Positions 9,358 to 49,526 of a stretch of DNA of 64,000 nt are shown here, piece after piece. Both the position numbers and the translations under genes were made by a program. A model generated the notes under the pieces. It was not told where the DNA came from. It searched no databases and saw nothing but the letters and a program-made list of their open reading frames with translations. Location: positions 39,308,001 through 39,372,000 of the forward strand of contig NC_043013.1 of assembly GCF_006345805.1 (NCBI RefSeq). The letters are read 5' to 3'. Each line of letters begins with the position of its first letter. Position 1 is the stretch's first letter. Source of the DNA: Octopus sinensis. Its lineage: Eukaryota.

Positions 9358-9554
9358 TCAATACTTCACAGCCATTTGACAGAATAATTCATATCCGAAT
9401 CCCACACATCCCGGAGATAGCATACACCTGATAGCACAGTCGAAAAGGCTGCCAACAGGAGTGACGGTCTTTAACTTTATGTCGCCGGATGTATTCCGTC
9501 GCCTGGTGTAAAGTGCTCGCCTCCGCATTGCGTCAGTGCCAGGAAAGGTTATCT
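9358..9554 (-). CDS. Gene A terminal exon 6, short PAN-like module 3 plus TGA
   Basis: tattttcacag acceptor, DCAIRCMLSPGCVGFGYELFCQMAVKY*; not in the ORF track. Confidence 0.88.
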
Positions 9555-47000: not shown

Positions 47001-49526
47001 CTGTTCCCTGGGCATTCAGCAATATATTCAATACTGAAATGAGAAGACGAAGTATATACAATTATATAGAAATAAAATTGGTATTAATCCAGAAGCTGCT
47101 TCACTACAAATAGTAGAGCTGCAACTTCTAATTCTCAAGAGTTGGGTCTTTTTCACTAAAAGTGACGGAATATTTTATTTATTTGAAATTCCTGTCATTA
47201 GACTATAGCCATGTTGGATGGGGGCGCTTTGAAAAATTTTGTCGAACGAATTAATCCTAGTCGGGTTTACACCATTTGCAATGAGGCTAAGAAAAATAAA
47301 GGATAAAATGAATTTACATTCAATCCAACAAGCAAAACATGATTATTCCATAATATGGGAGAAGACCAGCCCCAGATTACTCTGCCATTGCACTCTCTTC
47401 CCATTCCTCTAGCTTTGAAGAGCAGGCTCAGGGGAGTTCTCTGCAGCCTCGCCAGTCTCGCATCTGTCACTCATTTTTCGTTAAACACTTAAAGGCAGCT
47501 TCACTTTTCTATCTTCATATTCTTTATCAAGTAATCGCTCTCTCTTTACTCTTTTACTCGTTTCAGTCATGTGACTGTGGCCATGCTGAAGTACCGCCTT
47601 TAGTCGAAGAAATCGACCCCATGACTTATTCTTTGTAAGCCTAGTACTTAATCTATCGGTTTCTTTTGCCGAACCGCTAAGTTACGGGGACGTAAACACA
47701 CCACCATCGGTTGTCAAGCGATGTTGGGGGGACAAACACAGACACACACAAACAAACACACACATATATATATACATATACATATATACGACGGGCTCCT
47801 TTCAGTTTCCGTCTACCAAATCCACTCACAAGGCTTTGGTCGGCTCGAGGCTATAGAAGACACCAGCCACAGTAGTATTTTCAACAAGAAAAAATTAAAA
47901 TAATTCAACAGAAATAAATCAGTAAGTAAAGAAGCAAATGGAGAGGGCAGAGAAGAAGAAGAAGAAGCAGAAGAAGAAGAAGAAGAAGAAGAAGAGAAGA
48001 AGAAGAAGAAGAAGAAGAAGAAGAAGAAGAAGAAGAAGAAGAAGAATATAGAGGATAACGTTGGCTTAGTTGCTCACAGGATGAGATGATTAGGACTGGT
48101 ACAACTTTGAGCGGAGATAGTCGATTACATCGACCCCAGTGCGTAACTGGTACTTAATTTATCGACCCCGAAAGGATGAAAGGCAAAGTCGACCTCGGCG
48201 GAATTCGAACTCACAACGTAACGCAGACGAAATAGCGCTAAGCATTTCGCCCGGCGTGCTAACGTTTCTGCCAGTTCGCCGCCTTAACAACAGCAAGGAT
48301 AATGATAAAAAAAAAATCAACAAAGTGTATCTGGGACAGGCGGGGGCAAAGGTGTCCATATTCAACCCTGAGGGTCTATGTAGCTATCCAAAAAGAATTT
48401 GGTCATTAACGATCTTTATCACTTTCTTTAATAATTAACATTAAATTTCTTTTCATGTTTCTAATTAAAAATCTATAATAGCACAAAATAACGAAGTAAT
48501 TCTTGTAATTTTTTTTTTAATTAGCATACATTTTAGTTTCATGTTAGAAATTTACATGATGTGTATCGAGAATTTATTAATGATTCAATGAAGGCAGAGT
48601 CGATGGTAAAAGATGGTTGCCGAAGCCTACGCTATTTGGGCACTTGACCTGGTAAAAATAGCAGCCAAACAATTTTTAAGGGTTTTACATCCTCTTTCAG
48701 AAAAATAAAACTTATTGAATATTGAAGTTGCGGGTTTAGTATTCTTAGAAAATATACGGAATGATCACGGATGGAATGTATTTGAGTATAAGTGGGTGCT
48801 CAATGTGCGTTGGGTTTGGTGCTACATAATAATGAGAAATCGGTGAATTAGTCGTGATAGAATGCCTCAAGATTTCGTTTCAGTTCTCCGTGTCTTGAGT
48901 TTAAATACGGCCCGCGTCGACATTGCATTTAAGAAATACGGTCGTGGTGATAGAAATAGTAGCCAAATATGCCTCAAATTCTACTCTGCAACACTAACAA
49001 CTACAAAGAGTTGAGTGAACAACGAAGTGCTTAACAAGTTATAACTGACCAAGTGCAGATACAAAGGTCAAAGTTGAAAGGTTTTCTTTTTTATTATAGA
49101 TCTGCTGTATCAAGCCTGAACTGAGGTCAAATACCTATAAAACAAATAGCGCCAATTTCAGGCTAATGTTCCTCAATTCGCCCGTGGAATCGTTCTTCAG
49201 TTCAGGTAAGGATTTATTTACAAAATGTTTTAACCTGCTAGAAAGAGTGACTAAATCTCGTATAATTATGGGGCTTATTGCCGTCTTTAAAAAACATGAA
49301 GGTTACATGGAATAATGTGCTCCTAGATAGACTATATCCACACGAATAAAATAAATCACGTGATAGTCAACTCTGCAAGGCATTTCATCCTATGTCTGCG
49401 GGGCCCAAGCTGATGAAATATTGCACAAGAAGAAAAACCGGCAACAACAGCAGCAATAACAATAGCAACAACAAAGCGAAAACAGAAGGTGAACTTACCG
49501 AAATAAAATACAAGATGTTTCCACAT
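31880..49526 (-). CDS. Gene B: paralogous secreted triple PAN/apple-like domain protein, 6 coding exons, 275 aa
   Basis: complement(join(31880..32067,37834..37923,39611..39847,43518..43769,47001..47033,49499..49526)), 828 nt, all GT-AG phase-1 introns, no internal stop. Translation: MWKHLVFYFVLNILLNAQGTDADFPNRNKFMKLIYTEPVGEIKGIKQSLTLENCADTCLKMQSCKSFLANNKTFVCILYETASGEIRYQSLKDVYYFYYQKLINETCPINVFYGGKISNGNALSKHEMKTYVECLKLCRDNIKCYSTDFYANTGLCYLIPDNSTRMPMKSSSTKNRIATEVDREKFDNDENVLTDLNGKGCDLKFLYVLNLIDEKTYSNMRRAVLFSLRQNTLGDIKMAPATAVDGIYECAVSCITSPECVGFKYESQCQLAVKY. Confidence 0.85.
33339..35800 (+). repeat. 2.4-kb minisatellite, 20-bp unit tttgtatgtatgtgtgtat[a/g] with 24/28-bp variants
   Basis: Direct reading; explains the 450-890 aa ORFs seen in several frames. 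Confidence 0.95.
37834..37923 (-). CDS. Gene B exon 5, conserved 30-aa linker
   Basis: ttttttcag acceptor, G|GTAAGG donor, EKFDNDENVLTDLNGKGCDLKFLYVLNLID. Confidence 0.9.
39611..39847 (-). CDS. Gene B exon 4, PAN-like module 2
   Basis: gacacag acceptor, G|GTAAGA donor, ETCPINVFYGG...ECLKLCRDNIKCYSTDF...CYL. Confidence 0.9.
41100..42060 (+). mobile_element. Old R4/Dong-like RLE retrotransposon fragment
   Basis: WYQHKPENVLENQTVKLLWDF, RMWNTKARVVLIVIGDLG. Confidence 0.7.
43518..43769 (-). CDS. Gene B exon 3, PAN-like module 1
   Basis: Poly-T gtag acceptor, G|GTAAAC donor, NCADTCLKMQSCKSF...CILY. Confidence 0.9.
47001..47033 (-). CDS. Gene B exon 2 (33 nt, identical to gene A exon 2)
   Basis: Same splice sites and 33/33 nt identity with 18857..18889. 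Confidence 0.8.
49499..49526 (-). CDS. Gene B coding exon 1 (MWKHLVFYF)
   Basis: ATG at 49526, G|GTAAGT donor, homologous to 24068..24095. Confidence 0.75.

Follow-up and report, generated by a model that had tools for sequence, protein, structure and literature searches.

A tandem pair of predicted secreted triple-PAN genes in the genome of Octopus sinensis

Within a 64,000-nucleotide stretch of Octopus sinensis DNA (contig NC_043013.1, positions 39,308,001 to 39,372,000, hereafter the window), two minus strand loci raise the question of whether each is an intact gene of its own, what the encoded proteins may do and whether both copies are maintained. A preliminary description made from the sequence had proposed two intact six-exon genes with phase 1 introns, each encoding a 275-aa protein with a signal peptide, three PAN-like cysteine patterns and no catalytic or transmembrane domain. 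The analysis presented here points to a tandem pair, termed gene A and gene B, of secreted, disulfide-rich and PAN-only proteins, in which a conserved scaffold carries a fast-changing surface that probably binds an extracellular glycan or protein.

The window consists of AT-rich, repeat-laden animal DNA, and comparison of the window with itself identified the regions at ~10.4-25.1 kb and ~37.7-50.4 kb as collinear copies of one segment. Both gene models were rebuilt from the raw sequence, with exon 5 of each found using the Octopus bimaculoides protein as a guide. Gene A spans 9358-24095 and gene B 31880-49526, both on the minus strand, with six exons and a coding sequence of 828 nt (275 aa) free of internal stops in each case. 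The rebuilt models agree with those of the preliminary description, including the outer limits of exactly 9358 and 49526. All ten introns are of the GT-AG type, possess a polypyrimidine tract and are in phase 1. The genes are arranged head-to-tail with B upstream, A downstream and 7.8 kb between them, and the two proteins are ~54% identical. A third PAN gene copy was looked for and none was seen within the window. The exons are listed below.

Gene A exon 1, 24068-24095, minus strand: ATG exon of 28 nt (MRKRLLFCF), donor GTAAGT, phase 1; 99% identical in Octopus vulgaris, with MWKHLLFCF as the O. bimaculoides equivalent.
Gene A exon 2, 18857-18889, minus strand: 33 nt (VLNILLNAQGT), remainder of the signal peptide and predicted cleavage site; agrees with RefSeq XP_036366106.1.
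Gene A exon 3, 16654-16899, minus strand: PAN module 1, four scaffold Cys and the extra Cys44.
Gene A exon 4, 13631-13864, minus strand: core of PAN/apple module 2, five Cys.
Gene A exon 5, 10550-10639, minus strand: 90 nt (KFDNDPDVLTDLNGKGCDLKFLYVLHFLD), sixth Cys of module 2, the most conserved segment.
Gene A exon 6, 9358-9554, minus strand: linker and short PAN-like module 3 (four Cys), stop TGA.
Gene B exon 1, 49499-49526, minus strand: ATG exon of 28 nt (MWKHLVFYF), donor GTAAGT, phase 1.
Gene B exon 2, 47001-47033, minus strand: 33 nt, 100% identical to gene A exon 2.
Gene B exon 3, 43518-43769, minus strand: PAN module 1 (four Cys).
Gene B exon 4, 39611-39847, minus strand: core of PAN/apple module 2 (five Cys).
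Gene B exon 5, 37834-37923, minus strand: 90 nt, sixth Cys of module 2.
Gene B exon 6, 31880-32067, minus strand: linker and short PAN-like module 3 (four Cys), stop TGA.

Both N-termini (MRKRLLFCFVLNILLNAQG/T and MWKHLVFYFVLNILLNAQG/T) are organized like a signal peptide, in that a basic n-region precedes a hydrophobic core of 11 residues and a c-region whose AQG/T site fits the -3/-1 rule, all judged by applying the n/h/c-region and -3/-1 rules by hand. Beyond the signal peptide, a Kyte-Doolittle scan for transmembrane segments found no 19-aa window exceeding 1.2 in either protein. Pfam returned PAN families only, with PAN_1 (PF00024) matching three stretches per protein at whole-protein scores of 66.1 and 66.8 bits (E=1.5e-18 to 2.6e-18), and no kringle, protease or other non-PAN domain was matched in either protein. 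Against the curated PAN_1 gathering cutoff of 21.4 bits, module 1 of gene B (exon 3) reached 32.4 bits and module 2 (exons 4 and 5 together) 34.0 bits when scored alone. Module 3 alone (exon 6) scored 17.6 bits (E=0.0034), under the cutoff, although its cysteine spacing and its predicted strand-helix-hairpin (beta-alpha-beta-beta) core, modelled at a predicted local distance difference test score (pLDDT) of 61-70, resemble those of modules 1 and 2. The domain content put forward in the preliminary description thus holds, including in the Pfam search that it had itself proposed as a check. Taken together, the gene structure and the PAN identity of the products are close to certain.

The cysteines follow a C-x3-C-x5-C-x11-C spacing in modules 1 and 2; module 3 has the shorter C-x3-C-x5-C-x8-C. 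Modules 1 and 3 contain four cysteines each, and only module 2 shows the six-Cys arrangement of an apple domain in the strict sense, with additional cysteines at the start of the module and on the separate exon 5 (C107, C134, C138, C144, C156 and C201 in gene B). Neither these six nor any other of the 14 scaffold cysteines varies among A, B and the O. bimaculoides ortholog. Both proteins stop at ...AVKY directly after module 3. The mature gene A protein is basic (isoelectric point, pI, of 9.3), and that of gene B is near neutral (pI 7.8). The mature gene A protein contains 15 cysteines, the additional one being Cys44 (TKC, exon 3), which is shared with O. vulgaris A, missing in B and replaced by Trp in the O. 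bimaculoides A-ortholog. By analogy with apple 4 of factor XI (FXI), a free Cys44 could permit covalent dimerization.

The gene A protein (RefSeq version) was modelled with AlphaFold2 on a ten-sequence family alignment, and modules 1 and 2 reached pLDDT values of 74-90. Foldseek matched this model to solved PAN/apple structures in the PDB with a probability of 1.00, namely the FXI and prekallikrein apple domains, Toxoplasma gondii MIC4, the Sarcocystis muris galactose lectin SML-2, AMA1, the HGF N domain and the plasminogen PAp domain. This bears out the PAN assignment of the preliminary description, which had suggested an AlphaFold model as a further check. Modules 1 and 2 of the model thereby conform to the PAN/apple fold, a helix packed on an antiparallel sheet, which disulfides between the conserved cysteines would lock. 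When the family profile was compared with PDB sequences, the best matches were SML-2 and MIC4 (E=0.0023 and 0.0044).

MIC4 and SML-2 are binders of galactose-terminated glycans. Like the octopus proteins they are secreted and consist of consecutive PAN/apple modules only, without a catalytic domain, and they are a plausible functional analogue. They differ in belonging to the alveolate lineage, in module number and spacing and in sharing just 11-15% identity. The likeness lies in overall fold and profile, and may stem from a shuffled module that was reused convergently, not from orthology. FXI and prekallikrein gave the top Foldseek match over the entire model (E=2.5e-06) and share the six-Cys type of module 2 with its N- and C-terminal closing cysteines. 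However, they carry four apples followed by a trypsin-like protease, whereas the octopus proteins have no protease and just three modules, of which two belong to the 4-Cys type, at an identity of 12-16%. The N-terminal PAN domains of HGF and plasminogen gave the best single-domain superposition (root mean square deviation of 2.1-4.4 Å over 78-97 columns, 19-22% identity). The HGF N domain is a heparin binder, and the basic character of the gene A protein is a further point of likeness; the gene B protein is near neutral, however, and both octopus proteins are without kringles or protease. Because they have no protease or kringle domain, the octopus proteins belong neither with FXI and prekallikrein nor in the plasminogen/HGF family.

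The preliminary description had also drawn a comparison with the leech anti-platelet proteins LAPP and saratin. The common fold stands, but the resemblance to the anti-platelet protein, a type defined by a single PAN domain, salivary origin and collagen binding, is very weak. On such a comparison A and B could be salivary or venom factors of anti-haemostatic or anti-adhesive action, used on prey, and they are indeed small, secreted, PAN-only and fast-evolving in the manner of toxins, with the leech protein 1i8n appearing among the PDB profile matches. That match is marginal (E=0.11), though, and ranks under the apicomplexan lectins, HGF and plasminogen. The prey of octopuses is mainly crustaceans and molluscs, which are without platelet/collagen haemostasis, and a search of the full-text literature found nothing on these accessions or on octopus proteins with PAN/apple domains. 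A role of this kind is very improbable.

The favoured reading is instead that A and B are binders of a more general kind. A protein of ~29 kDa, with a cleavable signal peptide encoded partly in exon 1 and partly in exon 2, would enter the secretory pathway. In its mature form it would then consist of three disulfide-locked PAN/apple modules and nothing else, these being a 4-Cys PAN module, a 6-Cys apple closed by the cysteine of exon 5 and a shortened PAN-like module with four cysteines. As tandem-apple lectins and the FXI and prekallikrein apple disc do, the modules would most likely bind an extracellular glycan or protein ligand through their exposed faces. Binding is the likeliest mode of action given that neither an enzymatic nor a membrane-anchoring part is present. 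The cysteine scaffold and exon 5 would be held by purifying selection while surface positions change quickly, above all in copy B. Fast evolution of surface positions on a conserved scaffold suggests that the ligand itself is changing, as would be the case for a microbial, prey or gamete surface. Secretion, the binding function and diversifying evolution are what we infer from the features of the two genes described here. The salivary or venom, mucus, immune and gamete-surface roles named in the preliminary description are candidates within this reading.

The annotation status of the two genes differs. Gene A corresponds to RefSeq XP_036366106.1 (LOC118766662 isoform X2, 277 aa) and is identical to it save for two residues. 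The difference arises at a tandem acceptor of exon 3 at 16900-16905 (acag/TTGCAG/AAGC), where the public models take the AG located 6 nt upstream (16905) and thereby add Val-Ala. This upstream acceptor is used by the RefSeq, ENA, O. vulgaris and O. bimaculoides models, and because the models from the other two species make the same choice, the gene A protein is probably 277 aa long in reality. In gene B this exon offers just one acceptor. The full 275-aa protein of gene B was not found among the ~15 billion proteins of the collection searched, and the gene is without an annotation of its own, portions of it appearing only inside fused models. The preliminary description had considered the pair hidden from the open reading frame track, which is correct for gene B but overstated for gene A, as the latter already exists as a RefSeq LOC and it is B alone that has no separate model. 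That it did not recognise a named gene here was well founded, since no named or characterized ortholog was found and the relatives are all uncharacterized. Gene A is therefore an existing unnamed RefSeq LOC, and gene B, of a known domain class, has been missed by annotation.

The fused models raise the alternative that A and B form one long gene, or are routinely joined by read-through transcription, with a longer multi-PAN protein as the true product. RefSeq isoform X1 of LOC118766662 begins within B exon 4, at an internal Met, continues through B exon 5 and then enters A exons 2-6 (37834-37923 joined to 18857-18889), O. vulgaris CAI9735100.1 joins B exons 4-5 to A exon 3, and in O. bimaculoides XP_014768861.1 and.2 the B-ortholog runs on into exons 2-3 of the A-ortholog. 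Such joins stay in frame because all exons are in phase 1, and the first AATAAA 3' of the gene B stop codon is 928 nt away. However, A and B each possess their own ATG exon, signal peptide and in-frame stop in exon 6, the ATG exon and signal peptide of gene A are conserved in three species, and RefSeq models A alone as isoform X2. The fused models either start at an internal Met without a signal peptide or enter unrelated sequence, as is typical of prediction artefacts in tandem arrays, and the intergenic gap amounts to 7.8 kb. A single gene or routine read-through transcript is consequently considered unlikely. A related and decidedly speculative idea, to which we attach little probability, is that the array is used combinatorially, with read-through and inter-genic splicing yielding in-frame proteins that vary in the number and combination of fast-evolving PAN modules. 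It draws on the phase 1 state of every exon and on the three annotations that join B to A exons. If true, octopods would have a small, diversifiable repertoire of secreted recognition proteins, for example for microbial, gamete or self/non-self surfaces.

The B-then-A pair is present in the same order at the O. bimaculoides and O. vulgaris loci, and because the pair occurs in all three octopuses, the gene order places the duplication before the split of O. sinensis, O. vulgaris and O. bimaculoides. In O. vulgaris both genes are found at 96-99% exon identity, with A open over six exons and B open over exons 2-6, B exon 1 lying outside the O. vulgaris locus examined. Ten boundaries of exons 2-6 were checked in this species and the splice sites are all canonical. 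The sole indel seen in B is one of 9 nt in exon 6 of the O. vulgaris copy, and it is in frame. Rates of evolution, given as omega (the ratio of nonsynonymous to synonymous rates) and synonymous divergence (dS) from Nei-Gojobori estimates, are as follows.

A vs O. bimaculoides ortholog: omega 0.83, dS 0.106.
B vs O. bimaculoides ortholog: omega 0.95, dS 0.212.
Exon 4 (module 2 core), both ortholog comparisons: omega 1.4-1.5.
Exon 5, A vs B paralogs: omega 0.085, dS 1.3, the most constrained segment.
A vs O. vulgaris: omega 0.41, 6 nonsynonymous and 4 synonymous changes.
B vs O. vulgaris: omega 1.9, 22 nonsynonymous and 3 synonymous changes.

Several observations weigh against the proposed reading. 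An omega near 1 is also the expectation under relaxed constraint, and neither O. vulgaris comparison departs significantly from neutrality (p=0.24 and 0.46). Exon 3 of the O. bimaculoides A-ortholog (at ~27040 of its locus, L001) has a 19-nt deletion relative to O. sinensis that shifts the frame to a stop (…MAHARKQ*), which explains the truncated O. bimaculoides RefSeq model. The deletion is either a real pseudogenization or an assembly error, and unless it is the latter, at least one family member may be dispensable. Beyond the RefSeq models, the collection of 15 billion proteins contains no spliced, transcript-derived protein of A or B. The AlphaFold2 confidence is low for the linker at 207-235 and for module 3. 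Finally, identity to PAN proteins with a known ligand is just 11-22%, and the ligand class is therefore not transferable. A separate apparent absence, that of exon 5 from the O. bimaculoides A-ortholog, was considered as a loss and set aside as uninformative, the interval being masked with N.

The rates of B in both ortholog comparisons, the frameshift in the O. bimaculoides A-ortholog and the lack of an independent annotation or recorded transcript-derived protein for B could together indicate that gene B, or both genes, are non-functional duplicates drifting towards pseudogenes that happen to be open still. Against this, B is open with canonical splice sites and has kept its 14 cysteines at a dS of 0.21 from O. 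bimaculoides, exon 5 is strongly constrained and the only indel in B preserves the frame. When neutral substitution was simulated at the observed synonymous divergence, B stayed open in 0.24% of runs (P=0.0024) and retained all cysteines in 0 of 5000. Because neutrality so rarely leaves B open, and never with all its cysteines, these simulations argue that gene B is kept by selection and that its high omega represents change at non-scaffold positions, not decay. Drift towards a pseudogene is accordingly rated quite improbable. The 30-residue peptide of exon 5 (KFDNDxxVLTDLNGKGCDLKFLYVL) shows no differences between O. sinensis and O. vulgaris in either gene and may serve as a structural clasp or a binding motif.

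One part of the locus departs from the general divergence of the two copies. Exon 2 is 100% identical between A and B and its flanks are 96-99% identical, as compared with 63-80% for the remaining exons and 48-69% for the remaining intron flanks. The tract has the following two copies, the only ones within the window.

Tract copy A, 18497-19047, no strand assigned: 551 bp, contains exon 2, 96% identical to copy B.
Tract copy B, 46645-47191, no strand assigned: 96% identical to copy A.

Both O. vulgaris genes carry the tract. In the unmasked sequence of O. bimaculoides this exon 2 is found in the A-ortholog only, and the B-ortholog models use AVNPVVNDLGT. An exon 2 of the latter type was sought in the window, where no counterpart with a usable phase 1 donor exists, the 'FYLAVN' match at 23393 being due to chance. 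The tract probably arose by gene conversion; its distribution would be consistent with A having converted B in the lineage of O. sinensis and O. vulgaris, although stretches of the O. bimaculoides locus are masked.

The range of the family was determined by an exhaustive HMMER search of 1.84 billion representatives, using the O. bimaculoides ortholog as the query. There were 34 matches at E<=0.001, several of them to the artefactual N-terminus of the query. Matches to residues 1-44 were rejected as relatives, this extension being read-through 5' sequence shared with unrelated models. Among the matches whose source was looked up, the true relatives came from O. sinensis, O. vulgaris, O. bimaculoides, Argonauta hians, a few anonymous read assemblies and one annelid, the last being a giant multi-PAN protein. 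The octopod paralogs O. sinensis LOC118766705 (280 aa), O. bimaculoides LOC106868906 (276 aa) and LOC106868215 (279 aa), and A. hians GAB1605676.1 resemble A and B in length class, signal peptide, the three modules and the full-length cysteine framework, but are only 21-28% identical to them and are all labelled 'uncharacterized' or 'hypothetical'. Each of the Octopus paralogs shares a chromosome-scale contig with the A-B pair or its ortholog in the same species. The best-supported view of these matches is that the family is octopod-restricted, apart from the one annelid protein, and locally expanded, which is in keeping with the lineage-expanded family envisaged in the preliminary description, several paralogs of 275-280 aa lying on the same chromosome. 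O. bimaculoides A0A0L8HWB9 (182 aa), which comprises module 2, exon 5 and module 3, differs from the A-ortholog as well as from the B-ortholog, and no counterpart was seen in the 64-kb window. One or more further close paralogs are thereby suggested near the O. bimaculoides locus.

The introns and flanks of both genes are rich in repeats. A 2.45-kb minisatellite in intron 5 of gene B (33353-35797), with a 20-nt unit (TGTATATTTGTATGTATGTG) in ~117 copies, is the cause of false open reading frames of 680-890 aa on both strands. Microsatellites in gene A, (AGA)n of ~460 bp at 22005-22465 in intron 1 and (TAGA)n of ~260 bp at 12917-13179 in intron 4, account for pseudo-open reading frames of poly-E/K/R. 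Pseudo-frames of microsatellite origin also dominated a tblastx comparison of the two halves of the region, which yielded no usable match. Relics of a Tc1/mariner-like DDE_3 transposase (E=3e-9 and 4e-10) are located at 17711-18043 on the minus strand, in intron 2 of gene A, and at 9040-9324 on the plus strand, just past the stop of A; two fragments of similar appearance, at 1400-1675 and 53461-54063, were without a Pfam match. Many copies of a unit of ~184 bp resembling a short interspersed element occur in the introns of A and B, at 19436-19895 (2.5 tandem copies), 10910-11227, 17117-17398, 42242-42569 and 48119-48281, and this unit is the source of most non-collinear blastn matches.

Cephalopod genomes contain many lineage-specific families of secreted proteins without a known role, and PAN/apple modules and their tandem expansions are well known. 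Against this background the locus overturns nothing, and is a tidy case of phase 1 module shuffling combined with what is probably local gene conversion. The analysis supplies a corrected two-gene model for a locus that is fused or truncated in the O. sinensis, O. vulgaris and O. bimaculoides annotations. It also defines a triple-PAN family that appears octopod-restricted, in which an unannotated copy seems to be kept by selection while its surface changes fast. The A and B proteins are reasonable candidates for roles in recognition or adhesion, be it in immunity, mucus, feeding or fertilization.

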